Shown here in pieces: positions 1-29,500 of a stretch of DNA of 64,000 nt. Position 1 is the first letter of the stretch. Each line of letters begins with the position of its first letter. A model generated the notes under the pieces. The model saw nothing but the letters and a program-made list of their open reading frames with translations. It was not told the DNA's origin and searched no databases. The translations under genes and the position numbers were made by a program. The DNA comes from Oopsacas minuta (lineage: Eukaryota > Animalia > Porifera), in assembly GCA_024704765.1 (NCBI GenBank), contig JAKMXF010000110.1, forward strand, positions 744,001 through 808,000, in the 5' to 3' direction.

Positions 1-3
1 GTT

Positions 4-1835
4 ATGAAAGAACTGAAACCTAAGCTATCAATGTTAACTGCTACCGACACTAATTTTACAAATTCTCTTCCAAAGCTAGATTTACTGACGGTAGCATTTG
101 ATGAAACAGCTGAGAATAGATTACAAATGTTGATGGATAAAATACAGGAAATGCAGACACAACGGTTAGTGATGGTCCATCTTATCCATAACCAATTGAC
201 CCATCTGACCAGTAGCAGTCATAGAGAGAACGGATACTGGCCCGTTTTTGGTCTCGGCCACAGTCCTTGTCATATAGAGATGGTGTTGCTAATCATATTG
301 TAAATATATCCATATATAGTTCTACATTGGAACAACAGCTGAGAAGAGACATGGAATCAGATGACATCACTAGTCACCTGATATCTAGTGACAGTAATAG
401 AGAGAAAATATTTGAAGTCGGAATGAAGAAGCATAAAGATGCTGCAAACGTGATTAGACAGAATTGTCAAGCACAGGATAATATACTCAAGGTTTGTTTG
501 TTTGACTAGACAGATTGGTCATTTGAATACAGTGGAACCTGCATTAACCGACACTTGTTGAGACAGGTAATTGTGTCGGTTTATGCAGGTTCTACTGTGC
601 GTATTTCACACCTGATTTATGTAAATATTTGTTTGTATTTACGAGGTTGCTGTATAGGCTATGACAGAGACAAATGCTAGTTTAGCTGCACTCAGAAAGG
701 AATTGTTAACTGTCCGATCTGATAGAGAGAGTATGTTTAAAGGATTAGTTGAAGCCTGGAAGAGGATGGGGTCTACAGAGGATAGTCTTAAGGATGGTTA
801 GTAAACAAACAAACAAATACATAAACAAATAAATAAATCCACACTATTTGTTTGCTTTAGGAATGAAGTTTTATCAAAATCTTGACAAAAAGACCCTCAA
901 ACTATTTGAGACTATTAAATCCATTTTACCTCCACCTCCCATACAGCAGCCAATTAATCCATCTCATACAGCCACTATTCCACCACTTGACACCTATAAA
1001 CCTATTTCTCCATTTATGTCACCACCTGATGGCAGTGCTAGACCACCTGTACCATCAAGACGTCTTAAACCCGCCAATCAAACTGAAGATGTTAATTACG
1101 ATATAGAAGTTGTTGATGATACAGAGTTAAAGCTGTTAAACTGGGCAGCTTCAGAGCAAGTAAACAAACAAGTAAACATTGAGGTAAACAATAGTAGTTA
1201 CGAAATCAAAGTTCATATGTTTAGGCTATGTAAAATGATATACTTGTTTCTTATACCCACCGGATATAAGCACCATCCTCTGGAATACGGTTCTCACATA
1301 TTCCTGTATATTTATACCGGATATAAGAACCATCCTCTGGAATACGGTTCTCACATATTCCTGTATATTTATACCGGATATAAGAACATGTAATGCTACT
1401 CCCCAAGGGTGTTATTAAAATTCCAAACAAGTAATCTATCTTGTATTCATTCTTTAGCCAATTCAACAGATAGCTGTATCACCCTTGAGAGAATCAACAC
1501 ACGAATCATCGAATATTATTATTGCTCAATCGGCTCCTGTTCCTAAAATAGATTCTATTCTACCTTCCCCACCCAAACCAGTGACTGATCATATCATAGC
1601 ACCTGAACCTCAGTTACACATTCCACAGGTTCCTAACCTAGCAACGCCAGTATTTGACACTTCACAATTATCTCAGCTGATCCATTCGAATCAATCAGAG
1701 ACAAATAGGACAATTTCCTCTCTCCAAACTGGTCTCAATCGGATTAACCAATCAGTAGCCGAGTTAGGACTGAATATGACAGCTGTCATTAATCAGAGTA
1801 GCCAATCAAATGCTGCCATTTCTGCTCTAAACCAG
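4..1835 (+). CDS. ALIX/HD-PTP (PTPN23-like) V-domain protein, upstream part; the gene enters from before the window (exons ~1-164, 320-491, 658-796, 861-1159, 1470-1835)
   Basis: The spliced translation (RSTLEQQLRRDMESDDITSHLISS...QNCQAQDNILK|AMTETN...DG|MKFYQNL) resembles the PTPN23/ALIX V domain (DDIT..L, QN..AQD.L, EG.DFY.DL), followed by a Pro-rich region. GT-AG boundaries keep the frame. The last exon ends at a phase-0 donor (CAG|gtaatt, 1835) with no same-strand continuation. Confidence 0.8.
530..597. mobile_element. Short palindromic MITE with CAGT-type TIRs
   Basis: CAGTGGAACCTGCATTAACCGACAC ... GTGTCGGTTTATGCAGGTTCTACTG, with TA on the left. Related degenerate copies lie at ~8955-9000 and ~9049-9131. 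Confidence 0.7.
1252..1420. mobile_element. MITE family 2 copy with an internal 57-bp tandem duplication
   Basis: CCATCCTCTGGAATACGGTTCTCACATATTCCTGTATATTTATACCGGATATAAG occurs at 1273 and 1330. The same element is at 19370, 42063 and 52186. Confidence 0.75.
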
Positions 1836-1950
1836 GTAATTAGTTCTATTTTTAGTATCAAATTGTTTGTGTTATATATTGACGAATAATTATGTAAATA
1901 TCGGAACTATTCCTTTGTAAAAGGCGCGAAAATATGATTAATCATAAATA

Positions 1951-2110
1951 CAGTTAACTCCTGTTATATTAAACACGGATATATCAAAGTACCCGCTAAT
2001 ATCGAAGTGTGAATTATACAAATATGCTCCAAACCATAAAAGTTCCATACATTCCATTGGTTATGTCAAAGCAATAATAATAGACCCTTAAGCTTAATAT
2101 TACAGAAGTT
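1951..2110. mobile_element. MITE family 1 (TIR CAGTYAACTCCYGTTATA; Tc1/pogo-like)
   Basis: TA|CAGTTAACTCCTGTTATA...ACACGGATAT...ATATCGAAGTGTGAA...CCCTTAAGCTT...ATTACAGAAGTT. Homologous copies at 7531, 28607, 32823, ~46730 and ~56134. Confidence 0.75.
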
Positions 2111-3455
2111 TTATATTACAAACTATAAAATATTGGAAAATCAAACAAAACTAAACAAATTCAAACTTTGCAACTCTCAAAATGGCGACACAATTTCCTG
2201 AGCCAATCCCAGTGCCAATTGTAGACCCCTTAGAACAAGAAATCAACCAATCAATTGACAGGATGATATTCCTACTCAATCAGAGAAGAATCCATCTCTT
2301 AACCACTTTAAGAAATAAACGAGAAGAGACAAGAGCTAATCAGGTAGCGTGTCAGCAAATGAAGCAACAACTGGAAGAGACCCGAGCTCTTGTAGAAGGT
2401 AGAATGACACACAATCAACTCCCACTCCATTTCTGATAGATTAGTGGCAGAAATGCAAACAAAACTAGCAGAACTCCACCTCAACACACCACCACCTCAT
2501 GTACTGAGGTTCTTGTGTGATACACAAGACCTCGAAAGGAGTATTAACCGTCTAGGAGAGATCAGCCAACAAGAAATCAATCCCATCCCTCATATACCAG
2601 TAATCCCTAAGTACGCTGAATTCCAACAGCCCATTGTTGCTGTTGGGAAAGAAGGATCAGCTCCTGGGGAGTTTAAAGGGCCAAGAGGTGTCGCAATTGA
2701 ACCTGAATCTGGACACATTTATGTGGCAGATCAGTACAACAATCGTATACAAATATTCTCTCAGTCAGGAGACTATCTCAACCATTTCGGTAATCAACAC
2801 CTGAAAGAGCCATGGGGTATCCTAATCCATGAGGATAACATTTATGTTACAGACATAGAACATCACGCTATCTTCTTATTCAAGCTGCCAGACCTAACTA
2901 TGATAAAGCGAGTAGGTAAGGAAGGATCTGGTAGTGAAGAGTTCAATAATCCTAGACAACCCGCCATCTCTCCTAATACACACCTTTATGTACCAGATTA
3001 TTCCAACAACAGACTACAAATACTAACAACTAATTTGGTATTTACAGACACGCTAGAACACCAAACCATGACTGGACCTATTGATGTTAAATTCACAAAC
3101 AATGAAATGTTTGTGTTGAGCTGTGAAGACAATCCATGTATTCATGTGTTTACTCTCTCAGGAGAGAAGTCCCGCTCATTGATTACCGGAGGAATAGGAA
3201 TAGGAATGCAAGTTGAAGTAGCATACTTCTTCTGTCTAGACGGACATAATAACATTATCATAAGCAACTGCTGGGCTGACAGTATTAAAGTATTCTCACC
3301 AGAAGGAGACCTCCTACACGAGATAGGACAGAGAGGACAGAGAGGACATAAAGCTGGAATGTTTGACTCCCCTTACGGAATTACAATACACAACACAAAA
3401 CTAATTTGTGTTTCTAAAAACAATAATTTCTGTTTACAAATATTTTCTGCTTAAC
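2103..3455. repeat. Left arm of a ~1.35 kb inverted repeat (partner ~9785-11115)
   Basis: Reverse-complement match covers ~80 nt of upstream sequence and the whole NHL CDS, with identical tracts of >100 nt (e.g. ~2870-3000 vs ~10215-10350). Confidence 0.95.
2182..3454 (+). pseudogene. Coiled-coil + NHL-repeat (TRIM-NHL-like, no RING/B-box) gene with a +1 frameshift at ~2420
   Basis: ORFs 2182-2436 and 2444-3454 together equal the 9749-11032 paralog. There is an extra C (AACTCCCACTCC vs AACTCCACTCC). NHL motifs include FKGPRGVAIE, YVADQYNNRIQIF and FDSPYGI. The indel could be a homopolymer sequencing error. Confidence 0.8.
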
Positions 3456-3869
3456 AGTATTACATTTAAAACATTAAACTAACCATCAGCTGATTATAAT
3501 AGTTATGTAAACAGGAAAATACGTTAAACTGGTAACTCTTCAAGTTCCAGTTCAGCGATTCTCAACCCTAAATCCATGATGGTCTAAGGAGGACAGCCGG
3601 GGTCTATTCCAATGGAAGGGAGGATGAATCTGTCGGCTGAGACAAATGCCCAGCCAACAGATTGTGGCTCTGCGAGCACATAAGGAAAGGTGTCAAAATC
3701 TATGTATAATCACACGATTAGCGATAATAGTTCCATATCCCTGAGGTGCATATCTACACCCTAAAATGTACCCATGGGTCAAACGGACATCTCCCTATGT
3801 ATTCATACAACAAACTATACACATACCATAACTCCATAACAGTAACTAAGGTGTATTTATCATATTTAC

Positions 3870-4893
3870 CTCTAACATAGCAGATTTGTATATTTTCTCG
3901 TCTTTATCAAACTTTTTCATTTCAATAAGTTTCACAGCTGATCGATTACCAGTCTCCTTTTCAAAACATATTCTCACCTCGCCACACGCACCCTTACCCA
4001 GAGTCTTACCGATATCATAGCGACAGAGGAACTCCTTTGGAATATCTGGGTAATCAGAAGATCTCTGTTTTTCTTTATACACCCAAGAAACGTTCTTTCT
4101 TAAGCTGAGAGATATTTCAGAATTGTCTTTAAGTAAACAGGTCTTGTTCTTACCGATCTACAGTATGGACCATGGATGAGTAAGTGCTGTTATTGGCTAC
4201 CCACTCAAAGTGTCTTAAACAGGAAATAGCACATACCTTTGCTCCATTAACGAATGTTCCGTTGCTAGATTTATCATAAAGGAATACTCCATACTTCCTA
4301 GAGTCTTCTGAAGAGTCCTGATCCTTACCGGATTTAGGTTGTTCTCTGAATATCATGAAATGAACCTAGGAGATAGGTAGTAATTCTTTGTTAATATTTG
4401 TATTATATGTCTGTAAGGTCTACCTTAGACAGAGCCTGCCAATTCGGAACTTCGCAACCATTCTGCTGCTCATGTATGCATACAGTGCTCTCTTCATCTC
4501 TCCCAAAGGTGTATTCATCTTCAATCAAGTCAACCTGTGTATTAGAAACTATAATGTCAATAGGAATGCTGTACTGTCCAAATTGCAAATGAATTCGTTT
4601 GGATTAGTGAGATACAATAAAGGATAACTCGGGTTAAGACGAGTCACTATTTCTTATATTTCCCGTTTGTAATTGGACAATCAGGACAATCAGAATACTC
4701 TAGAACATTCCAAAGGTTGTATAACACCTATTTGTATCAAAGAGGGTCTACCTTATACCTTAGAGTATGCATCATGTAATGGGTACAGTCTACCCCATGT
4801 GTTAGCTTCACACTCATCTGCTAGCGGTTCAGACAGCTGAGAGGAACCAACACCTGCTATATCGCTAACGTCAATGGTCTGACAATCTGCCAT
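3870..4893 (-). CDS. CHEK2: Checkpoint kinase 2, 5' half (exons 4893-4759, 4534-4424, 4365-4237, 4157-3870): FHA domain and kinase N-lobe
   Basis: WGRLYPL, YTFGRD, SKVHF and DKSSNGTFVNG (FHA), then YDIGKTLGKGACGEVR...AVK. The exon ends at GAG|gtaaat (phase 0), exactly where the plus-strand exon at 11825 resumes. Confidence 0.93.
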
Positions 4894-5231
4894 ATCTATA
4901 TAGCTTAATTAGATTATGAGGAAATGGTAAGAGCTATAAACTTAAGAGCTATAAACTTGAAATTTGGTATGTGTGTGGTAAGTGATGGATATAGGAACCA
5001 AATCATTTTACACATATTTGATTGGTTTGAAAAGGGAAGGAATCCACAGAATGTGTTAAATTTGGTATAGGGAATACACGGGTGTAGGAATTTGGGAACA
5101 GCTGGTTTAGAGAAACCAATAATAGAAGTATTCAATATGAATAGTAGATAAATAGAAATATATCACACTGTAAACACCAACAAATAAACAAATAAACAAG
5201 CAAACAAACAAGCAAACAAACAAGAAGCAAT

Positions 5232-6201
5232 CTATGGTAAGTCAGTTAGTGCCCGCTTCGGAGGTAATCCTTTAGGTAATTCCTTTTCTTTCTTTTTCTC
5301 TTCAAACATTAGAATAATTTTCAGGATACTGTTCTTCTTGCCTAGCATCATGGTGAGGAACTCATGATAGTGTATAGTGCCTAAATATGATTAAATATGT
5401 GATAAATATTCATATTCGACATTTGGAAATGTCAGAATAGAATTCTACATACACGGTTACCCCTGATTAACCGTTGAAATGAAATCTCTAGCCTCATTTT
5501 TGATTTTGCCAAAAGGTGTGAAAATATCATTAATCATACAAAATTAGAGCTACTACATATATCTCACACTTCAACAACCAATAGGATTACATTCTACAAT
5601 AACCAATAGAATGGTAGTGTTTTACATTGTGACCAGCATCTAATCTAATTGGTCTAACTTTAAACACCAAAAAAGGTGTGAAAATACTCACATTATAAAA
5701 TTCCATACCCAAGGTGCACTTCTACACCCAAAAATGTACTCATGTGCCAATTTTCATGCCACCTGGCCTACTAGATTGCGCAAGACTCCGCGGACGGAAG
5801 TCACACATCGTCCATGCCAATTGGACATCTCCCTATAGGAAATTCCATTTTACCAAATCGGTTGTTACCACCATGCATAGTTACAGAACTATCACAATGG
5901 TATTTCCACTAAAAATACCTGAATCATTGGTATCAACTTCAGCTATCATTTTCTTTAGTTCCAGATGTGTCTTAGCCTGTCCTAATTTCTCCATCATTCT
6001 CTTTAGTTCCATTATATCAATATCTCCAGAATTATTCTCATCATACTCTATGAATTGGTTCTTGTATGATTCTAGTTTCAATTCCAATTCTTCTACATCA
6101 TCCCAGTCCCCACTTTGTAAATATTGATTGTTTATTTCCATTAGTTCACTCTCTTGTTTATTCTTTAAGATACCAAATGCTTTGCCACCTTGGTGAGCCA
6201 T
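5232..6201 (-). CDS. AIF1: Allograft inflammatory factor 1 / Iba1 EF-hand protein (exons 6201-5919, 5380-5232)
   Basis: QGGKAFGILK...DIDIMELKRMMEKLGQAKTHLELKKMIAEV|GTIHYHEFLTMMLGKKNSILKIILMFEEK...PPKRALTDLP*, matching the AIF1 family along its length. Confidence 0.93.
5395..5695 (-). repeat. ~300-bp dispersed repeat (family 3) carrying the GTGATTAATCATATTTTCACACCTTTTTGG motif
   Basis: Degenerate reverse-complement match to ~12975-13230. The core motif recurs at ~1920, 11350, 12150, 13655, 18941, 21350, 44992 and 63083. Confidence 0.65.
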
Positions 6202-6849
6202 CTAGCAAACAACAACAAATAAATGTGTCCGCACTATCCTTAAAAATCTCGAATCACCGTCTGTGCCAACTCAAATTTCCCGAATTAGTTTCAGTACTTA
6301 TTCAATTCTATAAATAGCCATTCTAGCAAAGAAAGAGAAATTTGAATTTTACTAATCTTGTTAGACTTTTGTAAGTTAAAACCGAATTATACGCGCCTGT
6401 TGACACCTACTTAACAGGTGGAAGCTAATGTCTATTAAAATCAGAAGGGGGGACACTAGTGAAAACGTTGGGATGTGTATATATACTTTCAGTTCCATAT
6501 ATGATATTCCAATCAATCTATTTATCGTATAAATAGGAATTCAACCAATAAATTCTTAGTATTTCAACCAATAAGATTACATAAAATTCCTTTTATAGTC
6601 AGCTGATTACTGAAACCATTGTGACACATGAAAGAACTATCTTTAATTAGTCAGCCATAAAAAGCGTTAAGTTATGAATAATTCTACAGAACAAATATTC
6701 TATTTTAGGACACAAATAATACATTTAATTGAACAGCTGTTAGTTGCTAGGGAAATATGAATCTCCATCAAATGAGTGAGCTACTAATTAGCACATATTA
6801 AGTAAACAAACAAACAAACAAACAAACAAACAATTAGCATATAACACTT

Positions 6850-7482
6850 TCAATAATTGTTGTCATATGTGTACCTATCTCGATACCTACCCCTGTGTCC
6901 TCTATTGTCCTTACGGTTATACTGCCCGTTCCAGCTGTATGTATCATAATACATTGGCGCTTCAGCTGATTGGTAATCGGAATTTGTCTTATAAGGTGGG
7001 TCTGTTTGATCGTCCTGCAGTGAAGTATTTTCAGAGGATTTGCCAGGGGAGACTGGTGGATCTGGAACTTTAATAGGTGCTAGTTCCAAATCAATACTGT
7101 TTACAATTCCAGTTATATCTTCTTGGTTCCAGTATAGATTAAATCTCAGCTGTTTTTGATGTTTACATTCTAAATGTATATTTTGCAATTTGTTACGTAT
7201 TTGTTGCAGCATTTTTTGTTGTAAATCAACCAATGAATCTCCGAGCTTAGTTTCTGTTTGTTGATGTAAATCTGTCAATATTTGTGTATTTATTTCTATT
7301 TGTTTATTTTTGTTTTCATATTCCAATTCCAAATTGTCGATTTTTGTTTGTAAGTGCTTTTTGTGATCTTTCAAGAGATTATCAAATTCTGTGAATTTTT
7401 GGTCCAATTCAGTTCTCATTTCTGTGAAAATATTCACACTTGTGGTTTCATCTGTATCGCTGCATTCCGATGCAGTTGCCAT
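6850..7482 (-). CDS. Intronless coiled-coil protein, same family as the 14.2-17.8 kb array
   Basis: 210-aa ORF; the N-terminal heptad block VNIFTEMRTELDQKF..LL.DHKK.L..KI..LE.EY aligns with VTIFQQARDTI...LENEY. Confidence 0.75.
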   Translation of the reverse strand: MATASECSDTDETTSVNIFTEMRTELDQKFTEFDNLLKDHKKHLQTKIDNLELEYENKNKQIEINTQILTDLHQQTETKLGDSLVDLQQKMLQQIRNKLQNIHLECKHQKQLRFNLYWNQEDITGIVNSIDLELAPIKVPDPPVSPGKSSENTSLQDDQTDPPYKTNSDYQSAEAPMYYDTYSWNGQYNRKDNRGHRGRYRDRYTYDNNY

Positions 7483-7530
7483 GGAAATTACTTAACTATT
7501 AACAAATATTTGTGAAGTCGGAATACATAC

Positions 7531-7695
7531 CAATCAACTGAAATATCAAACACGGATATATCTGAATACCCGCTGATATCGAAGTGTGAACTTGTACAAA
7601 TATGGTCCCAAACCTTCAAAGGAACAAATATCCCATCGGTTATATCAAAGGAATAATCACGGCCCCTTAAGCTTAGGTATAACAGGAGTCTAGTG
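7531..7695. mobile_element. MITE family 1 copy
   Basis: ACACGGATATATCTGAATACCCGCTGATATCGAAGTGTGAA...CCCCTTAAGCTT...TATAACAGGAGT. Confidence 0.75.
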
Positions 7696-7887
7696 TACAT
7701 ATTTACTTCTAATACCACAAATAAAATGGGATTTGTTCCAGACGGGTATTTATATATTTTCACACTTAAGTATGTAACTTGTCTGTGTGGTATAATTATA
7801 CAAATATCATGAGAGCAAATAATTGCGGGAAAGAAAGCAATAAATTCTGAATGTTATACTCAACAATATGCTAAATATACAATTGGA

Positions 7888-9513
7888 TTATTGGTGGGTT
7901 TGTGAGAGGAGTAACAGCTGTTTTTGAATTATCATCAGCTGATCTGGTGTCAGAGACTGAGGATTAGAACCAAGCTGCTTCTGTAACATTTGTAAATATG
8001 CATGTTGTTGAGGATTGAGGGGAGAATTTGGTTGTACAGCTGATTGTAAGGGTAACTGAGGATTAGATTGTACAGCTGATTGTAAGGGTAACTGAGGATT
8101 AGATTGTACAGCTGATTGTAAGGGTAACTGAGGATTTGATTGTACAGCTGATTGTAAGGGTAACTGAGGATTTGATTGTACAGCTGGTTGTAAGGGTAAC
8201 TGAGGATTTGATTGTACAGCTGGTTGTAAGGGTAACTGAGGATTAGATGGTACAGCTGATTGTAAGGGTAACTGAGGATTTGATTGGACCATGGATTGCG
8301 GAGGATACTGTACATTTGATTGGTTACTCATGATATTGCTATAAGAATGAGGCGGGTAATGAGAGACAGCTGGTATTGACTGTAGAGACTGAATATGCAT
8401 AAGAGATGGCTGTAATAATTGTGATACAGGCACTGGTGTAATACTAGGGGGCATAGACTGTTGGGGATACAGAGATTGAACCATGGATGAGTGAGAAGTG
8501 GGTAATGAGCTTAACGGATCAAGAGAAGTAATTGATTGGCTATCGATAGACATTTGATTGGTCAGTTTACTCCCTAGACATGATTCTGCTTGGGTAACAG
8601 AAAGTTGGAAAGCAGAGGAAGGTCGTAACTTAACAGGGGTAAATGCTGTCGGCTCAGATGGCAGAATTGTGTCCGGTTTATGCGACACAATTTCCGGTTT
8701 CTTCTCCAACAAATCCCACAGCTGTCCAACCTGACTCTCACCCTCTTTAGGCCTATCTTGGAAATCCAGTGGGTCTCTGGTAACCCTAGCATCTGATTGG
8801 TTAGGGAGTAATAAGATAGAATCTTGTTTGTTCCGAATTTGCCTCAGTTCTTCTTTGATTTCTGTCAGAGCTGTAGTTACACATAACACCTATTGAATTA
8901 TACAATAATATATACACAAGGGTTTCTATGGCTAGACAAATTTTGTAAAGTAACACCTGCATTAACTGACACTCGTTGATACAGGAAAATAGTGTCGTGT
9001 TAACAAATTGTCACCTTTTTGGATTCCAAAAATCACATTAGTAGGCACTACAGTAGAACCACGTTAATACATACACAAAGGGACCGTCGAGATTTGTACT
9101 CCTTATCCGGAGTATGGATTAACGAAGTTTCATTGAATATAGCCAATATATATGTTAGATGTGAGATATTTGAAGTGAAGAAATTCCTCAAAATAACCTT
9201 TTGTTTGTTTGTTTGTTTATTTGTTTACAAGCTAAGAACTTACTTCTTGTGAAGTAGTAGATATATTATTGTTTATGTTTTCCAAAAGAGGTTCTAATTT
9301 TAGAACAATATCACTCTGTTTCTGTGTCACATGATCAAACAGCTGATTGAGTCTGTTGACACCTTCTTGTGATGATTTCTCTATTAACTCAATTCTAGCT
9401 AATAGATTAGCTTCTACAAGCTTAATCAGCTGAGAAGTGTATACCGTATTTTGATTGGTTGTTTGCAAATGAGCAGACAGCTGTTCTATACTCGTGTTTT
9501 GATTGGTTGTCAC
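7888..9513 (-). CDS. Probable 3' half of the V-domain gene (exons 9513-9244, 8889-7888): coiled coil plus Pro/Gln-rich tail
   Basis: Begins at an acceptor (aatag|GTG, phase 0) rather than an ATG. Exon 9513-9244 is 90 codons and joins 8889 in phase 0. Composition continues the S/N/Q coiled coil of exon 1470-1835. Confidence 0.75.
8032..8285. repeat. 36-bp coding tandem repeat, 7 copies (QSNPQLPLQ[SP]AV)
   Basis: Unit TTGTACAGCTGATTGTAAGGGTAACTGAGGATT[AT]GA is read directly. Confidence 0.95.
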
Positions 9514-9748
9514 CTATTAATAGAATATATTCATAAACACTCATGTACCAATTGGACAGTATTTAGGCGCCGAAATTAGAATTTTGAACCTTTGACATTT
9601 GTCATTTGTCATACTTAGGTCAGACAATTTAGAAAGTAGCCTCCTGTCCTTGCCCCCTATCAAGGGTACAAATATTCACTAAAGGTACCAGCTATGATCC
9701 AAAGTAATCAATAAACATATCTAATAATTAATCCAAAATATTACAATT

Positions 9749-11032
9749 CTAGCGAGGATTTTGCGAGAAAATTAAATTAAACAGAAAATATTTGTAAACA
9801 AAAATTTTGTTTTTAGAAACACAAATTAGTTTTGTGTTGTGTATTGTAATTCCGGAAGGGAAGACAAACATTCCAGCTTTATGTCCTCTCTGTCCTATCT
9901 TGTGTAGGAGGTCTCCTTCTGGTGAGAATACTTTAATATTGTTAGTTAAGCAGTCGCTTATGATAATGTTATTATGTCCATCTAGACAGAAGAAGTATGC
10001 TCTTCCAACTTGCATTCCTAATTCTCCGGTAATCAATGAGTAGGACTTCTCTCCTGAGAGAGTAAACACATGAATACATGGATTGTCTTTCAGGCTCAAC
10101 ACAAACATTTCATTGTTTGTGAATTTAACATCAATAGGTCCAGTCATGGTTTTGTGTTCTAGCGTGTCTGTAAATACCAAATTAGTTGTTAGTATTTGTA
10201 GTCTGTTGTTGTTATAATCTGGTACATAAAGGTGTGTATTAGGAGAGATGGCGGGTTGTCTAGGATTATTGAACTCTTCACTACCAGATCCTTCCTTACC
10301 TACTCGCTTTATCATAGTTAGGTCTGGCAGCTTGAATAAGAAGATAGCGTAATGTACTATGTCAGTAACATAAATGTTATCCTCATGGATTAGGATACCC
10401 CATGGCTTTTTCAGGTGTTGATTACCGAATTGGTTGAGATAGTCTCCTGACTGAGAGAATATTTGTATACGATTGTTGAGCATATCTGCCACATAAATGT
10501 GTCCAGATTCAGGTTCAATTGCGACACCACTTGGCCCTTTAAACTCCCCAGGAGCTGATCCTGTTATTCCAACAGTAACAATTGGCTGTTGGAATTCAGC
10601 ATACTTAGGGATTACTGGTATATGAGGGATGGGATGGATTTCTTGTTGGCTGATCTCTCCTAGACGGTTAATACTCCTTTCGAGGTCTTGTGTATCACAC
10701 AAGAACCTCAGTACATGAGGTGGTGGTGTGTTGAGGTGGAGTTCTGCTAGTTTTGTTTGCATTTCTGCCACTAATCTATCAGAAATGGAGTGGAGTTGAT
10801 TGTGTGTCATTTTCCCTTCTACAAGAGCTCGGGTCTCTTCCAGTTGTTGCTTCATTTGCTGACATGCCACCTGATTAGCTCTTGTCTCTTCTCGTTTATT
10901 TCTTAAAGTGGTTAAGAGATGGATTCTTCTCTGATTGAGTAGGAATATCATCCTGTCAATTGATTGGTTGATTTCTTGTTCTAAGGGGTCTACAATTGGC
11001 ACTTGGATTGGCTCAGGAAATTGTGTCGCCAT
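9749..11032 (-). CDS. Coiled-coil + NHL-repeat protein; a -1 indel near 9812 replaces the normal C-terminus
   Basis: 427-aa ORF. Compared with the plus copy (AAC AAT AAT TTC TGT TTA CAA ATA TTT TCT GCT TAA), this copy lacks one base and reads through to 9749. Confidence 0.88.
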   Translation of the reverse strand: MATQFPEPIQVPIVDPLEQEINQSIDRMIFLLNQRRIHLLTTLRNKREETRANQVACQQMKQQLEETRALVEGKMTHNQLHSISDRLVAEMQTKLAELHLNTPPPHVLRFLCDTQDLERSINRLGEISQQEIHPIPHIPVIPKYAEFQQPIVTVGITGSAPGEFKGPSGVAIEPESGHIYVADMLNNRIQIFSQSGDYLNQFGNQHLKKPWGILIHEDNIYVTDIVHYAIFLFKLPDLTMIKRVGKEGSGSEEFNNPRQPAISPNTHLYVPDYNNNRLQILTTNLVFTDTLEHKTMTGPIDVKFTNNEMFVLSLKDNPCIHVFTLSGEKSYSLITGELGMQVGRAYFFCLDGHNNIIISDCLTNNIKVFSPEGDLLHKIGQRGHKAGMFVFPSGITIHNTKLICVSKNKIFVYKYFLFNLIFSQNPR

Positions 11033-11115
11033 TTTGAGAGTTGCAAAGTTTGAATTTGTTTAGTTTTGTTTGATTCAAATTTCCAATATTTTATATTTTG
11101 TAATATAAAACTGCT
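9785..11115. repeat. Right arm of the ~1.35 kb inverted repeat
   Basis: Reverse complement of 2103-3455. Confidence 0.95.
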
Positions 11116-11527
11116 GAACTGACACAATTATTAAAATAGAATAATTATCAGTGGTTTGTGTCGTGTGACCTCTTCCATGTACTCTGATCTTGTGACACAA
11201 TCTTATTACAGATAATATTGTTATTGGTTGTGTCGTGTTGAGCCATCTGAATAGATTGTGGATTATTTGATTAATAATATATTTGAATAAATTCTAATAA
11301 ATTCAAACTGATAATTTGAGTTAACCTTTGAACCTATATTAATTGGTAATTAGTGATTAATCACATTTTCACGCCTTTTCCCACGGAATTCAACTCTGAG
11401 TTTCCCGATAACATACCTCCTTTGTGTATACTTGCTCTTTGTTAGTTTATAACTTGTTTCAGCCATTTTCTCCGGTTTTCCATATACAAAGATATGGAGA
11501 ACTTCGTTAATATGAACACCTATGTCA

Positions 11528-11696
11528 CCATAGTTGACACCATTAGGACCTCCACTAATTGAATTAAGCAAGAGAAATGATCATAAAAAGTTGAGAATTC
11601 TAAAATAGGAAAATTAATTCAAATTCAAGTGATGAATTAAGACTGCATTCCATTCTACATATTGGTATCCATGAAGGATACATTAACATGTTGTGA
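11528..11696 (-). repeat. Inverted copy of the CHEK2 terminal codons and 3'UTR (13424-13601)
   Basis: TCACAACATGTTAATGTATCCTTCATGGATACCAATATGTAGAATGGAATGC...GTGTCAACTATGG is present in both orientations with few mismatches. Confidence 0.9.
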
Positions 11697-11824
11697 TATC
11701 TTCCTCTTATATCCTTTAATTCGTACTGTTCTGTGGAAACGGGGACTTTAGGAAAGGAAGTGAATCTGTAAAGCGAATACACATTTTCTGGTGTGTCCCT
11801 GTTTATATTATTGCTTACGCTTAG

Positions 11825-13465
11825 GTAGAGATCTTACAGCAACTGAATCACCCTTGTGTAATCCGTATAGAGGGTGCTTACCAATCTAACACCTTGTTCC
11901 TGATTGTATTGGAACTAATGGAGGGAGGAGAGCTGTTCGATTGGATAATATCTCTAGGGAAGATGAAGGAAGATCAAGCTAAATATGTGTTCTTTCAAAT
12001 GTTACTAGCTGTAAGGTGTGTTAAATTGTAACTATAAACACAGTTAGTTCCGGTTATATCTAAGCTTAAGGTATCGTTAGAATTAGCCGATGAAGTATAG
12101 CGAATATTTCCTTGTTAATTATAACGGAAGAGGTTTTGCCATTATTCATGTTTTCACACCTTTTTTAGTGATTAATCATATTTTCACAGCTTCTAGCCTT
12201 ATCATATAGATTTGTTACCAAGGGGTAATCATATGTAACTAACTTTAGTTCCAATTTACTCTACATTCTACTTTTAGATATTTACATAGTCAGGATATAA
12301 CTCATAGAGATCTTAAACCTGAGAATGTGTTGCTAACCAAACAAACTGAGGAATGTACAATCAAAATAACAGATTTTGGATTGTCACGAGTGGTTGGAGA
12401 GAATTCATTAATGAAGACACTTTGTGGCACGCCCTCATATTTGGCGCCAGAAGTTCTTTTGAACGCTGAATCCCGTGGTTACGGTCAAAAATGTGACTGT
12501 TGGAGTTTAGGTGTTATATTATTCATACAGCTGTCTGGCTACCCTCCTTTCTCTAATGAGATTACTACACATAGTCTGAGAGAACAGATTACTCAAGGAT
12601 TGTACTCATTCCCAAAGGTGTGAGATTATGCATGGGTCCTTTTATACCCTAGGGGGTCAATTTGTTCTCGTTTGTACTTGTCTAATTACTTGCTAACAAG
12701 GTGTTACAGTGTGTAACTATATCAGCTGTTCTGAGGTGTCATATTAACATAACGTATTGAATTTAATTAGTAATATGTATGTATGTATAGGAGTACTGGG
12801 GTGAGGTGTCAGGTGTTCCTATCTCCCTGATTAGGTCTCTGCTAGAGGTGGATGTAGATAAGAGGATTACTGTACAGCAGGCTATTGAACATCCATGGTT
12901 CAATGATCAAGATCTACAGAGGAAAGTATGTTGTGTATTATTTAATACAGATTATTGGGAGATATGATTAGTATTTTGGAATGTGAATATTTTCACACCT
13001 TTTTGGTGTATAATGATAAGGCATTATATTGGTGCTACTGGATGTGTACACTGTCATTCTCTTGGTTGTTGAAGTATTTGATATAATTATTTGTGATTAA
13101 TCATATTTTAACACCTTTTGGCCATTATTCAAAATCTTGTTACAGTTTTCGTTTCAACGGTTAGTCTGGGGTAATCGCGTACGTAGAATTCGATTCTGAC
13201 GTTTATCCGTGAATATTTATCATATTATTTTCCATTTTTTTAGATAAAGTCTAAATTTGGAAAGGACATAATTGTACAGGCCCTTGCTCCATCCAGGACA
13301 GAAAGGAAAAGAGGTTCTCAGGATAAATCTAATTATAATAATGCAAAAAGATCTAATATCGAAGCTGGTAAAATATGTCCTGCTGATTTGGACACTAATA
13401 GACCCATTGGATCATTCTCTCAGTCACAACATGTTAATGTATCCTTCATGGATACCAATATGTAG
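11825..13465 (+). CDS. CHEK2: Checkpoint kinase 2, 3' half (exons 11825-12015, 12278-12617, 12791-12925, 13244-13465)
   Basis: ttag|[12 protein letters not shown]...[12 protein letters not shown]...FFQMLLAVR|[19 protein letters not shown]...KITDFGLSR...[14 protein letters not shown]...[10 protein letters not shown]. It starts at an acceptor, not an ATG. Confidence 0.93.
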
Positions 13466-13764
13466 AATGGAATGCTATCTTAATTCATCACTTGAATTTT
13501 AATTAGTTTTCCTATTTTAGAATTCTCAACTTTTTATGATCATTTCTCTTGCTTGATTGATTTTAATTCAATTAGTGGAGGCCTAATGGTGTCAACTATG
13601 GGGACAGGTCCAATTAATGGTATTGTATAGATGTGTACCTGTGCCAAAATGTTAATATTTTCACACCTTTTTCATACAATTAGACAAGTTAACACTTATC
13701 AAATTTCAACAATTCACTTCTATTTATACTTACTCATAATCTGCTCAACCAATCAAATACAAGA

Positions 13765-14210: not shown

Positions 14211-14843
14211 ATGGCAAGTTGGGTTCCGGGACCGGACGGATTGAGCCTGGTTGAGTTACCAACTGAAGCTGAACCTCTAACAACTGTCACAATATTCCAA
14301 CAAGCTAGAGACACAATAGATACAGATATTAATGAGATTATTGAGTGTCTAAATAATAAGAGAAAACAGCTGTTTGAGGAGATTACTAATTTAGAGAATG
14401 AGTATACACGTAAACAACAACAAACACAAAAAGAAATACAGAAATTAACAAATCTAATAACACATACAGAAGAAGCATTGGGAGAGAATAATCTGTTAGA
14501 AATACAAAATAAACTAATTGGGGATATCAGACAAGAAATAGAAAAAATAAATTTAGAAATCGAGCAAGAACCAAACTACAATATTGAAGTAAAATGGAAA
14601 CAATATTCTAAAGGTATAGCTTTTCTTATTATTAATGATTACGTCATAGAGAAAGTTAGTCAAGAAGCTCCCTCCACTGGACAAGGGATTATTCCTTTAA
14701 GCGATGATCAATATTTCGAATCAACTAACTCACACGATGACCTGCTCGTGGTCAGTTCTCCAGCATTTGATTTACCTAGTTTAACACCGGGTATAGAACT
14801 AACACCGGCTATACAACCGGCCATCTTTTATACCCTCAACTAG
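14211..14843 (+). CDS. Intronless coiled-coil family member 1
   Basis: 210-aa ORF with the VTIFQQARDTIDTDINEIIECLNNKRKQLFEEITNLENEY core. Confidence 0.8.
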   Translation: MASWVPGPDGLSLVELPTEAEPLTTVTIFQQARDTIDTDINEIIECLNNKRKQLFEEITNLENEYTRKQQQTQKEIQKLTNLITHTEEALGENNLLEIQNKLIGDIRQEIEKINLEIEQEPNYNIEVKWKQYSKGIAFLIINDYVIEKVSQEAPSTGQGIIPLSDDQYFESTNSHDDLLVVSSPAFDLPSLTPGIELTPAIQPAIFYTLN

Positions 14844-14998
14844 GACTAGAAACTAAAACCAGAATATATTTGACAATTAGCCATTTACCTATTTTATAGT
14901 ATTTCTATATATTTTGTTTCCTATTTGGATTTGAATATTTGTAAACATTGAGTTGTTTGTTGTTGTTTATTTTAATTAATTTCTCGTACTTGTAAGAA

Positions 14999-15883
14999 AT
15001 GGCTAGTAAAAGCGTACCAGAAGATGTCACAATATTCCAACAAGCTAGAGACACAATAGATACAGATGTTAATGAGATTATTGAGTGTCTAAATAATAAG
15101 AGAAAACAGCTGTTTGAGGAGATTACTAATTTAGAGAATGAGTATACACGTAAACAACAACAAACACAAAAAGAACTACAAAAGCTACAAACCCTGATAT
15201 CACAGACCGAAGAATTAGGAGAGAATAATCTGTTGAAGTTACAGCGGAAAGTAGTAGCGGAGATTCAAGAAGAAATAGAAAATCTGAGTTTAGAAAGTGA
15301 ACAAAATCCGAATTATAATATTAAAGTCAAATGGGAATACTCAAAGCGTTCAGTATTTCTTATTGTTGGGAATTATACTATTGAGAAGGTTTATCGAGAT
15401 AAACAATCCACTGAACCATGGAGTACTTCCTCTATCGATGGTCAGGAAGTTACTGTAGTTGTTGGTTCAGGAGAGGGCAAGGATGCTGATTTAAAAGTAA
15501 GGGAGGGAGGTAGCACTGTGTCTAAAGAGGAGGTAGTTGTAGACACCCGTAATTCAGAGGTTAAGGAGAAAATCCGTGAGATTCCAAAGGTAAAAGTAGG
15601 AAAGGAGGATTCTTATAGTGCACATATTCCAAAGGGAGAATCCTGGCATGATGGTAGAACTAATTACCGTTCTGACTGGAGTCATATAGGAAGATATTCT
15701 GATAGAAATTATCAAGATTATGAGAACTGGGAATGGGATGCTTCTGATAAACATAATCAAGCAGAGTTTAATAACGTTTTGGGGGGAGAATTTCGACAAG
15801 GAGGGTTTGATAGAGGAGATTTTGGACAGAATAAGAGGGAAGGTAGGAAGCACAGGTCTCGATTTAGAAAGCCGAGGAATTAG
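14999..15883 (+). CDS. Intronless coiled-coil family member 2, R/G/D-rich tail
   Basis: 294-aa ORF with the same core, near-identical in nucleotide sequence to member 1 over ~150 nt. Confidence 0.82.
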   Translation: MASKSVPEDVTIFQQARDTIDTDVNEIIECLNNKRKQLFEEITNLENEYTRKQQQTQKELQKLQTLISQTEELGENNLLKLQRKVVAEIQEEIENLSLESEQNPNYNIKVKWEYSKRSVFLIVGNYTIEKVYRDKQSTEPWSTSSIDGQEVTVVVGSGEGKDADLKVREGGSTVSKEEVVVDTRNSEVKEKIREIPKVKVGKEDSYSAHIPKGESWHDGRTNYRSDWSHIGRYSDRNYQDYENWEWDASDKHNQAEFNNVLGGEFRQGGFDRGDFGQNKREGRKHRSRFRKPRN

Positions 15884-16170
15884 AGAGGTTATAACGGCGA
15901 CAACGCAGATCCCTAATCTGAATTAATGCAAGCTAGTCTCACTTGTTTCTTAATAATATAATTTTGAGAATTACTCAAGTTTATCTATTAAATATTTCCT
16001 CTTTTCTAGAGATTTATTCTTTGCTTGATAGAACAGAGAATACAGTAGACTAATCGGGTCACAGTAAACTAGTGCCGATGTACACGGAGTCTACTGATCT
16101 AAATATGTTGTTATCGATATATTGACATCTATTCAAGAATTCTGTATCTTTATTAATTCTAATTTTAGAC

Positions 16171-16713
16171 ATGACTGATTGGGAAGAGGAAATTGCATCT
16201 CCGATAAATGTCACAATATTCCAACAGGCGAGGGACACAATAGAGCAAGATATTAGTAAGATAATTCAAAGTCTAAATGATAAAAAGGCTGTAATGTTTG
16301 AAGAGATAGATAGACTCGAGCAGGAATATGCACATAAACAGGAAAAGTTCCTGACTAATTTGAATACACTAGATTCTTTGAAAATGCGAACAGAAGAGGA
16401 ATTAGGAGACAATATTCTGGCAAAAGTACAGAAGAAAGTGATTAAGGATTTGCAGGAAGGGATAAACCTAATGAATTTAGAGATTGAAAACTCTCCTGAT
16501 TATGAAATTAAAATAAGATGGCGAATGAATGTAGACAAATTGCTACAGAACATTAGCATTTCATCGATTGAGGTTAAGATGGCGAATGTACAACAAGTTC
16601 AAGCTGCTCAGCTACCAGTTTATGTAGCTGATACTTTTAGAAGTACAAAGAATAACAAGACTTTTGGTTCTCGTCATGAATTCCCTCACATCGATTGGGA
16701 TGATGAATGGTAG
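16171..16713 (+). CDS. Intronless coiled-coil family member 3 (more divergent)
   Basis: 180-aa ORF: NVTIFQQARDTIEQDI...EELGDNIL...PDYEIKIRW. Confidence 0.8.
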   Translation: MTDWEEEIASPINVTIFQQARDTIEQDISKIIQSLNDKKAVMFEEIDRLEQEYAHKQEKFLTNLNTLDSLKMRTEEELGDNILAKVQKKVIKDLQEGINLMNLEIENSPDYEIKIRWRMNVDKLLQNISISSIEVKMANVQQVQAAQLPVYVADTFRSTKNNKTFGSRHEFPHIDWDDEW

Positions 16714-16920
16714 TTGAATTAATATTCAATATTGCCATCACTCTATCTACATATGAACTAACTCTTTATTCTTTATCTTATTACTTTTGTGAAAACAAAT
16801 TTGATAATTTCAGTGTTGAACTAAAAGCTCTAATTAAATTAGTTTTGTTATAGTGTGGCTACCAGCTGATACTGTGTTGGTGTTTATTCATCATTGAAAT
16901 ATTTCCCGTACTTGTAAGAA

Positions 16921-17811
16921 ATGGCTAGTATAATTGTACCGGAAGATGTCACAATATTCCAACAAGCTAGAGACACAATAGATACAGATATTAATGAGAT
17001 AGTACAGTATCTTATTGATAAAAAGGTTCAGCTGTTTGAGGAAATTACTAATTTAGAAGATGAGTATAAACGTAAACAACAACAAACACAAAAAGAAATA
17101 CAGAAGCTTGATTCATTATTGACACAGACAGAGGAATTAGGAGAGAATAATCTATTGAAAGTACAACATAAGTTAGTCACAGAACTTCAAGAAGAAATAG
17201 AAAAATTGAATTTAAACACCAAAAGAGAGCTTAACTACAATATTGAAGTAAAATGGAAGTGTCACTCTAAAGGTGTAACATTTGGTATAATTGATGGATA
17301 TTGTATACAGAAGGTTAGTAGAGTAACTAACTCGACAAAACAAATGGAGAGTTCTGGTCCAAACGATTATCAGGACTATTCTGTAGACGATCATTTAGAT
17401 AGTTCAGGAGAGGGCCAGTCTAGTGAAGTAGGGATACCTGAGGGAGGTTATGGCAGAGGCTTTCGTGGCACAAGGGTAAGTTTGGGAAGAGGAAGAGGAA
17501 GTTTTATGCCAGATTTTCAGAACAGCAATCCCTGTGAAGATGGACCAAACTATCAGAGGGAAAACTCTAATGCTAAAGGTTTTCCTCGTGACTTATCTGA
17601 AGATAGAAATAATGGATCATTATTTTGGGGTCATAGGGGATTCTCATCGAACCGTAATTCTGTCAGTCGTGACATGAGAGATTTTGGGAAGGAAGAGGGA
17701 TTTGGTGAAAATCATAATCATATCTCTAGACAAAACAAGAACCGATTTAGAAGAATGCCGAAGACTAGTTATAAAGAACAAGCAAGGAGTTTTTATAGTG
17801 ACTGGGACTAG
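16921..17811 (+). CDS. Intronless coiled-coil family member 4, RG/RGG-rich tail
   Basis: 296-aa ORF with the core plus GGYGRGFRGTRVSLGRGRGSF. Confidence 0.82.
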   Translation: MASIIVPEDVTIFQQARDTIDTDINEIVQYLIDKKVQLFEEITNLEDEYKRKQQQTQKEIQKLDSLLTQTEELGENNLLKVQHKLVTELQEEIEKLNLNTKRELNYNIEVKWKCHSKGVTFGIIDGYCIQKVSRVTNSTKQMESSGPNDYQDYSVDDHLDSSGEGQSSEVGIPEGGYGRGFRGTRVSLGRGRGSFMPDFQNSNPCEDGPNYQRENSNAKGFPRDLSEDRNNGSLFWGHRGFSSNRNSVSRDMRDFGKEEGFGENHNHISRQNKNRFRRMPKTSYKEQARSFYSDWD

Positions 17812-26500: not shown

Positions 26501-29500
26501 TTATATTATAGTTCTGGTACTGGGGGCAGGGTGTGTAGAGCTGTTTCCCTAGTTATGTAGGTTACACTATAGACTTCTATATAATGCATCACCTGCTTAT
26601 TATCAGTTAACACTCTATTACACAGGACACTATCTTGAATGAGGATCATAACAGTGACTTCATAAGATTCAGGAGTGTTAGTGTATATGAATTAATGCAT
26701 GATGTCATGTGGATATATGGAGAATTGGATACATTCAAAGAGGTGAGCTAAATTGTTGTTTTGTTGTTGTTTGTTGTTTATTGTTTGTTTTACAGATGTT
26801 CCAGATATTGCTACGCAGTGAGAATACATGGACAGAATCGGAGAGTGCTCTGTTTATGATGCATATTGTAGCAGATGAACTCAGAGAGTGAGTACTTAGT
26901 TACCAGCTGGTGTATGGAATGATTGTATAATTACGTATGTGTCTACAGGAGTAAGTCTGAGTTGATCGGGCAATTGGTACGCACTCTCCTGTCCCTACAG
27001 GACAACTGTCATCCTCTGGTTAAGCGGTCTGCTATTAAGGTACTACATCATCTCTCTGACTGGATTAACTGTAACCAAGAACTCATAGGTTAGTATATCA
27101 CACCTCCATATAGGGGGTGACACTATATCAACATGGATACGGATATTACGTTCTGGTATTTATATCTTCATAGATATTCGTATGTGTCTTTATGATATTT
27201 CCAAGTGTGAACTCGTAGATTTAAATCATAAAATCTGTATACAAATATTAATAATATTAATAATATTAATAATATTAATAATATATTAATATTAATAATA
27301 TTATTAATATTTCTATTTTTAGCTATTATATCTACAGTTTTGTTATTATATACTTTTCTTATAAATATTTGCAATCTGTCATTTGCTAAACCCTACAAAC
27401 AACAAATTTCTGCCAGTAATAGCCACCTTATGGACCTAATATGAGGTATAGACCATTGAATTTAACTCTGTAAGTGTGGAATTCTACGGTATATTCTCTT
27501 GAATAATCAATTCTGTATTTATCGCTATGATTGATAGAAAAATTCTTACAATTATTTCTATTCTACCAACAACCTTAGAGCATATGAATAATCAAAAGTC
27601 ATTTAATGACAGTCATTGTAGGAAGTGGAAACACAAATTTACTCCAGTCTCTTGTAATGACTTTATAGAGGATCCACTTTATGTAATATTAAAGTTGTTA
27701 CGAATCTAATACTGTTTGTGGCCCATTTATTTACTCGACACAATTTTCACACCTTGTAAATGTGTAGGTTTTTAATTAAAGATTAATAATATAGTCAAAT
27801 CAGCTAAATTTATTCTTGTGACCGATTATGCAACTGGTCTGAGCTGAATAATCAATTCGTGTTGACAAAATCGAATCATTTTCTTAAAGAGTTCGTAGTC
27901 ATCAAATCCATAACCTGACACTTCTCCCTCTGTCTGTCTATCTATCCATTGAAGTACCTTATCCTCTGTCTGTCTATCTATCCATTGAAGTAACCTTACC
28001 CTCTCTCCTCCATTTATAGATCCTGTGCTCCGATTTATGATAACATCACTCAGAAATGATAGAATAAAATCAGCAGCTGCTGCTGGTATACAGGCTATAT
28101 GTTTCTCTTGTCAGGATAAAATACACCTGTCACACTTCGAGGGGTTATTCCAGGTAATTATTGATTTGTTTTGTTGTTATTTACCTGTGAATATTATTGT
28201 TTATTAATCAGATTTGTTTGTATTTTCATCGAATGTCTACCCGAATATTTTTCTGCCATATTATTGCATAACACTACGGTATGCTGAGAGTATCATTGAA
28301 TATTATTATTGCCGTAGCTAGAATTCTATAGTTATTTTCTAAATATCCAGATAATATCGCTCATGAATGTTTTCACATATCCGAGGGCTACAGGGGAGGA
28401 CTTCTCAGATTTCTAATCTTTTATTTAGGTATTACAGAGCGCAGAAGAACTCGGTCTAAGTAACGATTCTGTAGTTACAATACTAAAATCACTTGGATAC
28501 ATTATAAGCCATCAACCGCCAGATAAGTATGAGAGCTGTTTGAGTAATGTTGTAGCTCTACAAGTCAAGCCTCTACACCAGGTAACCTGTAGCTTATTGA
28601 TACGGACAGTCACCTCCTGTTATATCTAACACGGATATTTCTAAATACCCGCGTATATCGAAGTGTGAATTGTACAAACCGTCAAAGTAACATACATTCC
28701 ATCAGTCATATCTGAGTAATTATCAGAGGCCCTTTGAGCTTAAATATTACAGAATTTATTGTATTTGTTTTGAGTTTTAAAAATGAGTTCGTTTACATTT
28801 CTAAATATTTTTAGATTTTTGTAACAAAATATACATACCCATATAGGGTAGTGATGAATTTGTTTTAACAAGTCTTGTAATGTTTTCTATCCGCCAGCGA
28901 TTATCCACTGAATTACGGTAATAGCACCTGCTAATACGTGATATGATTCTAATAATAAAAGGTAGATTTGTTATAACTTCTATTGACGATAATACCTTAC
29001 ATTACTCTTCATTATAATTATTATCCTCTGAACTCTGAGCTAAATATAACCTAACACAGATTAGGTTGCAGTTTGTTGGCTTAAGAATTGTAAAGCTATA
29101 AATTCGAGATTGGTAAGATAGAATACAAATTGTAAATATGTTATCCTTCAGAAGACAGATTCAAAGACAACAAAGCTGTCAAGCATGTTTGACCTTAACT
29201 TTATCATTAAAGCAATATAGTTCAGATAAATCTAAACTAACGAGTGACATTTTAAGTTTACAGAATACTCTTATACAACTTAAACAGGACGTTAAGATTC
29301 TTAGAATTGAGAATATTTCTGCTGAAACTGGACTCAGAGAGAGTGCTAAGCAATGGCAGCGTCCAGAGAATAGTTTTTATTTTACAACTATTGACGATGA
29401 CTACGAACTTCCAAAATCTTCTTTGTCCATTGGATCTAGACCACCGCTTGTCCGCCCAAGGAAATCCAGATTTATCCCTGAAGTATCGATTGAGCGTCCC

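Follow-up and report, generated by a model that had tools for sequence, protein, structure and literature searches.

In the assembled genome of the glass sponge Oopsacas minuta, the gene of the checkpoint kinase CHK2 and the gene of an ALIX-like Bro1/V-domain protein are each cut within an intron and continue on the opposite strand, both cuts being made by the reversal of a single 6.3-kb segment. The segment lies in a 64,000-nt stretch of contig JAKMXF010000110.1 (assembly GCA_024704765.1), termed the window, in which position x is contig position 744000 + x. Inverted copies of an NHL-repeat gene, the left arm (L) and the right arm (R), bracket the segment. The block of ALIX-like exons V_f and V_g (the exons of this gene are designated V_a to V_g), a coiled-coil gene, the AIF-1 gene and CHK2 exons 1–4 is flipped relative to the ancestor, and its orientation is derived. 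Two NHL copies that differ in origin contributed to both arms, each arm being the reciprocal recombinant of the other. Our tentative interpretation is that the flip is real and that the sequenced sponge material carries a young inversion that arose by non-allelic homologous recombination; to this we assign a chance slightly below even. A mis-join at the repeat is the closest competitor; judged from the assembled sequence, these two explanations, both put forward in an earlier sequence-only reading of the window, appear to be almost evenly balanced.

The proposed CHK2 break, at 3870 on the minus strand and 11825 on the plus strand, agrees with the splice sites, the Pfam matches and the alignments to CHK2 proteins. 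Exon 4 ends at 3870 and is followed on the minus strand by GTAAAT, and exon 5 starts at 11825 on the plus strand behind ...CTTAG, both in phase 0. The Pfam FHA match is located at 4150–4356 (−), positions 1–43 of the Pfam kinase profile fall on the minus-strand exon 3870–4082, and positions 74–112 and 131–212 fall on the plus-strand CHK2 exons. Residues 1 to ~219 of full-length CHK2 proteins of other animals match 4881→3855 (−) and residues ~211 to 437 match 11813→12928 (+), collinear overall. The two halves are those of a CHK2 gene: an FHA domain is followed by a kinase domain that is completed across both halves, collinear with the CHK2 orthologs. GenBank annotates CHK2 as two genes, of 228 aa and 264 aa. 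The 228-aa protein (KAI6658090) corresponds to exons 1–4 and reads 7 codons into the intron; the 264-aa model spans window positions 11918 to 13465. A pair of 140-nt inverted repeats, 95% identical (11557–11696 and 13424–13563), flanks the CHK2 3′ half and resembles two copies of a short dispersed element, the GenBank 3′ model ending within the second copy.

Both split genes are undamaged. The CHK2 and ALIX-like exons contain no stops or frameshifts, and all of them align full-length to those of relatives. At 97 columns that are near-invariant in comparison with 28 other CHK2 proteins, O. minuta CHK2 carries no private substitution; it deviates at two of the 97, and both deviations are common to relatives. 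Protein searches found no second O. minuta CHK2 among annotated proteins of 90–849 aa. A full-length sponge CHK2 as query retrieved no O. minuta protein of 267–849 aa and no Logan fragments, and with the exon-4 region of a relative as query the only O. minuta match was the 228-aa half, again with no Logan fragments.

The break of the ALIX-like gene, placed in the sequence-only reading at 1835 (+) and 9513 (−) in phase 0, was confirmed. Exon V_e ends at 1835 and is followed by GTAATT, V_f starts at 9513 on the minus strand behind ...AATAG, both in phase 0, and all four splice sites at the breaks are canonical. A 665-aa GenBank model that covers window positions 1–1835 and upstream sequence carries BRO1 and ALIX_LYPXL_bnd domains (precomputed Pfam). 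The split gene hence encodes an ALIX/HD-PTP-type Bro1 protein, with a Bro1 domain followed by a V (LYPXL-binding) domain; a Pfam scan of the short V pieces inside the window gave no match. The continuity of V_e with V_f, previously only inferred, is proven by L004, a contig of a close relative: the two exons belong to one gene because they are neighbours on one strand there. The 665-aa model terminates inside the left NHL copy, and an 812-aa GenBank model fuses the right-arm NHL gene with the ALIX-like 3′ exons (window 7888–11032). A GenBank 'NHL repeat containing protein' of 533 aa from another locus (L006 6001–8768, P0271) likewise consists of an NHL gene and ALIX-like tail exons; the 533-aa and 812-aa fusions are probably gene-prediction artefacts at nested genes. 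A short tandem repeat in an ALIX-like intron (1250–1400) reads as a repeated peptide-like string in one frame.

The order of the locus before the flip was established from relatives and from duplicates within O. minuta. A search with one kinase exon identified L003 and L004, contigs of two close relatives from ENA holobiont assemblies, and the synteny comparison that had been suggested found both collinear on a single strand. L004 carries V_a–V_e, V_f, V_g, an NHL gene, the coiled-coil gene, AIF-1, CHK2 exons 1–7 and a coiled-coil array. L003 carries the coiled-coil gene, AIF-1, CHK2 exon 1, an NHL gene in intron 1 and CHK2 exons 2–7. In the two relatives CHK2 intron 4 measures only 61 and 283 nt. 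Further NHL copies in the O. minuta assembly, L006 (contig 9) and L009 (contig JAKMXF010000015), lie in partial duplicates of the ALIX-like gene. L009 comprises V exons from the Bro1 region through V_e, an intron, the NHL copy, the NHL 3′ flank and the first 24 nt of V_f, and its intron/NHL junction is identical to that of the left arm. L006 has the end of V_e, followed by an NHL unit, V_f and a portion of V_g. Both record a collinear V_e–NHL–V_f stage within O. minuta. The collinear order is ancestral because the assemblies of two relatives and these two older partial duplicates keep it, and re-inverting the segment restores both genes, as had been predicted (L003, L004, L006, L009).

The NHL gene in CHK2 intron 1 of L003 (6508–7746) is an unrelated family member (~35% identical), and NHL genes occupy different spots of the CHK2/ALIX-like locus in each species, the one in L004 lying between the ALIX-like and coiled-coil genes. 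The ALIX-like copy of L009 (1–4584) is a second, truncated one, running from Bro1 through V_e at 92–96% identity, with a broken NHL copy and then 24 nt of V_f at its end; it might cover part of the gene's function. The CHK2 loci of two further contigs (P0007 family; L001 10001–11458 and L002 10001–11482), which come from a different group of sponge holobiont assemblies, were unusable for synteny. CHK2 is a single intronless ORF there, in contrast to the gene of seven or more exons in O. minuta; the P0007 members are 73–85% identical to each other, and the neighbours are quite different (Pex19, Rad60-SLD, MRP-L27 and a tyrosine phosphatase).

The inverted NHL repeat of ~1.35 kb that had been reported in both break intervals was recovered by repeat search and by alignment. 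The repeat search delimits the arms to 2139–3429 and 9801–11075 in five collinear pieces of 90–98% identity, and the alignment extends them to 2103–3454 and 9777–11116. Identity is ~95% overall, reaching ~98% in the outer third and falling to ~94% further in. Both arms are NHL-repeat propeller genes (Pfam). The gene orientations, minus between the arms and plus outside, agree with the GenBank annotation. The longest identical runs between the arms measure 135, 157 and 137 nt. The left arm has a private +1 frameshift at ~2421; the right arm has a private −1 deletion at ~9806, by which its ORF runs past the ancestral stop to 9749, although the homology ends at 9777 and not at the ORF end. The arms have diverged from each other by a dS of 0.041, and the left core differs by a dS of 0.019 from L008, an intact, free-standing NHL gene ~105 kb away on the same contig; dN/dS is ~1 for all pairs. 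Differences between the NHL copies (2580–3380, 9850–10640) are mostly non-synonymous, 40 vs 8, and often affect two or three bases of one codon. A dispersed MITE-like repeat of ~150 nt occurs at window positions 1949–2110, 7543–7698, 28606–28779 and 46720–46823 and also in L006 and L009; it adjoins the left arm on the outside and recurs in the flipped segment, and both orientations are matched in L009.

The sequence-only reading had treated the arms as plain paralogs, a view that had to be abandoned. The O. minuta assembly holds four NHL copies of the same subfamily beyond the two arms. Six NHL copies were aligned, and quartet sites were scored for a switch of partner. In the 5′ flank, more than 150 quartet sites pair L with L009 and R with L008, and no site contradicts this pairing; in the core (2346–3241) the partners are exchanged, L pairing with L008 and R with L009 in 10 events, again without contradiction. 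The partner switches once per arm, within 2103–2345 of the left and 11116–10869 of the right arm, and no sequence is inserted or deleted there. Identical runs of 71 nt and 135 nt between the arms fall in this exchange interval. The left arm thus combines a 5′ flank that is the V-gene intron with an L008-type core, and it halts abruptly at the stop codon against CHK2 intron 4. The right arm combines an L008-type 5′ flank of ~350–430 nt with an L009-type core and an L009/L006-type 3′ flank that continues into V_f. An excess of derived changes in R over L across the whole core, ~3-fold when polarised with only L006 and L007 as outgroups, was at one point counted against chimeric arms and was superseded by L008 and L009. 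The exchange could be confined to 33 nt by means of a 5-nt indel at 2138, which was disregarded because that site is prone to indels in all copies.

Each parental NHL copy keeps its own lesion because both the +1 (2421) and the −1 (~9806) lie on the inner side of the exchange. The idea that re-inversion restores an intact NHL gene was rejected, as both frameshifts are private and on that same side. Seven sites have derived states common only to L and R, and a 100-nt patch (3266–3366) has mixed affinities; together they point to gene conversion among the NHL copies. The L/R-only derived sites also fit arms that recombine with each other in vivo.

Coordinates of the features are collected in Table 1.

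Table 1 Features of the split locus in the O. minuta window.
Feature	Position	Strand	Remark
ALIX-like Bro1/V-domain gene, exons V_a to V_e	1–1835	+	start lies left of window
Left arm, NHL-repeat gene copy	2103–3454	+	ATG 2182; ancestral stop 3452–3454
Exchange interval, left arm	2103–2345	+	quartet sites, identical runs
CHK2 intron 4, proximal part	3455–3869	−	adjoins left arm
CHK2 exons 1–4	4893–3870	−	SQ-rich N-terminus, FHA domain, kinase-profile positions 1–43
AIF-1 (EF-hand) gene	5232–6201	−	within flipped segment
210-aa coiled-coil gene	6850–7482	−	paralog of plus-strand array 14211–17811
ALIX-like exons V_f (9513–9235) and V_g (8889–7888)	7888–9513	−	Q/P-rich tail
Native 3′ flank of NHL unit, continuing into V_f intron	9619–9776	−	same continuity in L009, L006
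Right arm, NHL-repeat gene copy	9777–11116	−	ATG 11032
Exchange interval, right arm	10869–11116	−	quartet sites, identical runs
L008-type promoter flank on right arm	11117–11463	−	82–100% identical to L008 flank
CHK2 exons 5–7	11825–12964	+	remainder of kinase domain

The history that we favour begins with the order ALIX-like gene, coiled-coil gene, AIF-1 and CHK2 on one strand, as seen in the collinear contigs, with an NHL gene nested in sense orientation between V_e and V_f. Judged from the flanks, a second NHL copy would then have entered CHK2 intron 4 in antisense orientation, apparently derived from the free-standing gene ~105 kb away and accompanied by ~430 nt of promoter flank, with its 3′ flank left behind. 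In the assembly as it stands, the two copies have swapped partners at their promoter-proximal ends (2103–2345 / 11116–10869), and the swap reverses the 6.3 kb in between, so that each host gene is cut within an intron. The remaining step, that the flip is present in DNA molecules and not just in the assembly graph, is inferred. Inverted homologous repeats lie at both ends of the flipped segment, as expected for an inversion mediated by recombination. The identical runs between the arms, at 135–157 nt, are about as long as the 150-nt reads and far below the spans of mate pairs and PacBio reads at 186× coverage.

If real, the inversion is probably not old and possibly not fixed. The exchange is young because both split genes are undamaged and no second CHK2 is annotated; moreover, it must postdate the arrival of the L008-type copy (L/L008 split, dS 0.019) and is therefore young in any case. 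A rough estimate, from zero hits in the ~2.75 kb that the split deprives of function and from a rate of ~0.1 disabling changes for each neutral substitution (as in the arms), puts the split at less than ~1% neutral divergence. This is a loose bound, by which the split would be younger than the arms' own divergence, although the second copy need not have arrived much earlier than the split. Under either of the two leading readings, it is very probable that O. minuta has the genes in a collinear and functional order, or had them so until very recently.

An error of the assembler, only somewhat less probable in our judgement than the inversion, accounts for much of the same evidence. The living genome would then have the collinear order, its ALIX-like intron housing one NHL copy and CHK2 intron 4 another in inverted orientation, and one wrong turn of the graph within a shared run would reverse the middle 6.3 kb and make the chimeric arms. 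The assembly was produced by hybrid SPAdes (k 21–99) from 150-nt Illumina and Canu-corrected PacBio reads, followed by mate-pair scaffolding with SSPACE, GapFiller and Pilon polishing, at 186× coverage and with no Hi-C or optical map behind it (PMC10280926). Several points speak for such an error or weigh against the inversion. Hybrid de Bruijn assemblies with later scaffolding, gap filling and polishing are prone to errors of this type, the O. minuta assembly had no long-range validation, and the 135-nt identical run in the exchange interval exceeds k = 99. A single wrong turn yields exactly the reciprocal chimeras observed. Two conserved genes that are cut yet pristine are what an error blind to genes gives, and CHK2 appears single-copy and has been retained by all relatives that were examined. 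For a crossover, the position of the exchange, within the outermost 243 nt of the 1.35-kb homology, is somewhat unusual. The collections searched contained no second O. minuta assembly and no transcript-derived protein; when the right-arm NHL ORF, the coiled-coil gene and eight ORFs of the window were searched for exact matches, the GenBank contig was the only match, if there was one at all.

Inversion at an inverted repeat is a standard class of misassembly, and the flip resembles it in several respects: inverted repeats exactly delimit a unique segment, both arms are chimeras, the junctions contain no added sequence and gene content is ignored. It differs from the typical case in its short identical runs, which are far below the span of long reads and make this an easy case for the data. 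The shared sequence does not exceed the span of reads, pairs or long reads, and with an arm difference of ~5% over 1.35 kb, paired reads, mate pairs and PacBio reads should each fix the orientation. The window is also free of N gaps.

The remaining explanations fare considerably worse. The inversion may be old and fixed, the split genes still working through genic trans-splicing (exon 4 to exon 5 and V_e to V_f) or through back-and-forth flipping, which is judged very unlikely. The four canonical splice sites at the breaks and the intact exons are compatible with it. A spliced leader is reported in the glass sponge Aphrocallistes vastus (PMC10282587), and the gene-conversion footprints suggest that the arms interact. 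The collections searched, however, yielded no junction transcript and no O. minuta CHK2 protein longer than the two halves, and the exchange postdates the L/L008 split, its youth alone being enough to explain the intact genes. Similarly slim is the chance of a recurrent flip through the NHL copies, with both orientations coexisting and CHK2 toggled together with the ALIX-like tail, or of a fixed flip rescued by trans-splicing. The flipped segment holds the CHK2 5′ half, AIF-1, the coiled-coil gene and the ALIX-like 3′ exons only, with no recombinase gene, and its ends are 1.35-kb gene copies, not the short recombinase sites of a programmed switch. The flip-flop segment and the rescue by trans-splicing that the sequence-only reading had considered receive no support: no positive evidence for either emerged, and a young exchange explains the intact genes more simply.

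Still less probable is an origin in one step, by which a single inversion with staggered breaks, or replication with template switching, would have duplicated one NHL gene to both ends of the segment. Inverted duplications at inversion ends do occur in Drosophila, and a 10-nt match (CAGAAGTTTT) is found at the outer edge of the left arm. This origin is rejected because the left outer junction predates the flip and because the parents of the arms differ. The same intron/NHL junction is present in L009, where the NHL copy continues into V_f; the L core groups with L008, the R flank with L008 and the R core with L009. In addition, several disabling mutations would be expected in the split genes at the age of the arms (dS 0.041), and none is seen. 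That the halves are dead remnants of duplicated genes, with intact CHK2 and ALIX-like genes elsewhere in the genome, is just as remote: partial ALIX-like duplicates do exist (L006, L009), but the protein searches described above found no other CHK2 among the annotated O. minuta proteins, the halves are complementary, non-overlapping and undamaged, and they have the same neighbours as the one CHK2 locus of the relatives.

Adjacent to CHK2, a tandem array of coiled-coil genes is conserved in all three species (window 14211–17811, L003 17692–20352 and L004 11430–19471). The genes of these arrays share an N-terminal VTIFQQARDTID-type motif and match no Pfam family.

Opposite-strand exon groups of one protein, with donor and acceptor intact, are also known from mod(mdg4) of Drosophila, where genic trans-splicing joins the products of a gene split across strands. 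Unlike mod(mdg4), no joined O. minuta transcript is known, the gene of the relatives is collinear and the split is apparently young. A closer counterpart is the intron-22 inversion of F8 in haemophilia A, where the intronless F8A gene nested in the intron (int22h-1) recombines with inverted extragenic copies (int22h-2/3) and cuts F8, with precise chimeric junctions (PMC3211038). The nested NHL copies would play the role of F8A/int22h. In contrast to F8, both NHL copies are nested in introns, so that two genes are cut reciprocally; the NHL repeats are 1.35 kb long, ~95% identical and 6.3 kb apart, whereas the F8 repeats are 9.5 kb long, >99% identical and ~500 kb apart. The O. minuta flip, unlike the F8 inversion, is known from assembled sequence alone.

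If the flip is real, it would be a non-bilaterian and two-sided example of the F8-type mechanism, in which one exchange between intron-nested gene copies inactivates a DNA-damage checkpoint kinase and leaves an ESCRT adaptor truncated. The sequenced material came from adults of one cave population (PMC10280926), and the inversion would be a loss-of-function allele of recent origin in a small cave population; O. minuta has already drawn attention for its loss of genes. If the flip is an artefact, GenBank carries CHK2 as two fragments (228 and 264 aa) together with two false NHL/ALIX-like fusions, and comparisons of gene content based on the O. minuta proteome would miscount the CHK2 and ALIX-like genes. 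Either way, members of the large glass-sponge NHL family repeatedly settle in introns and exchange sequence with each other.

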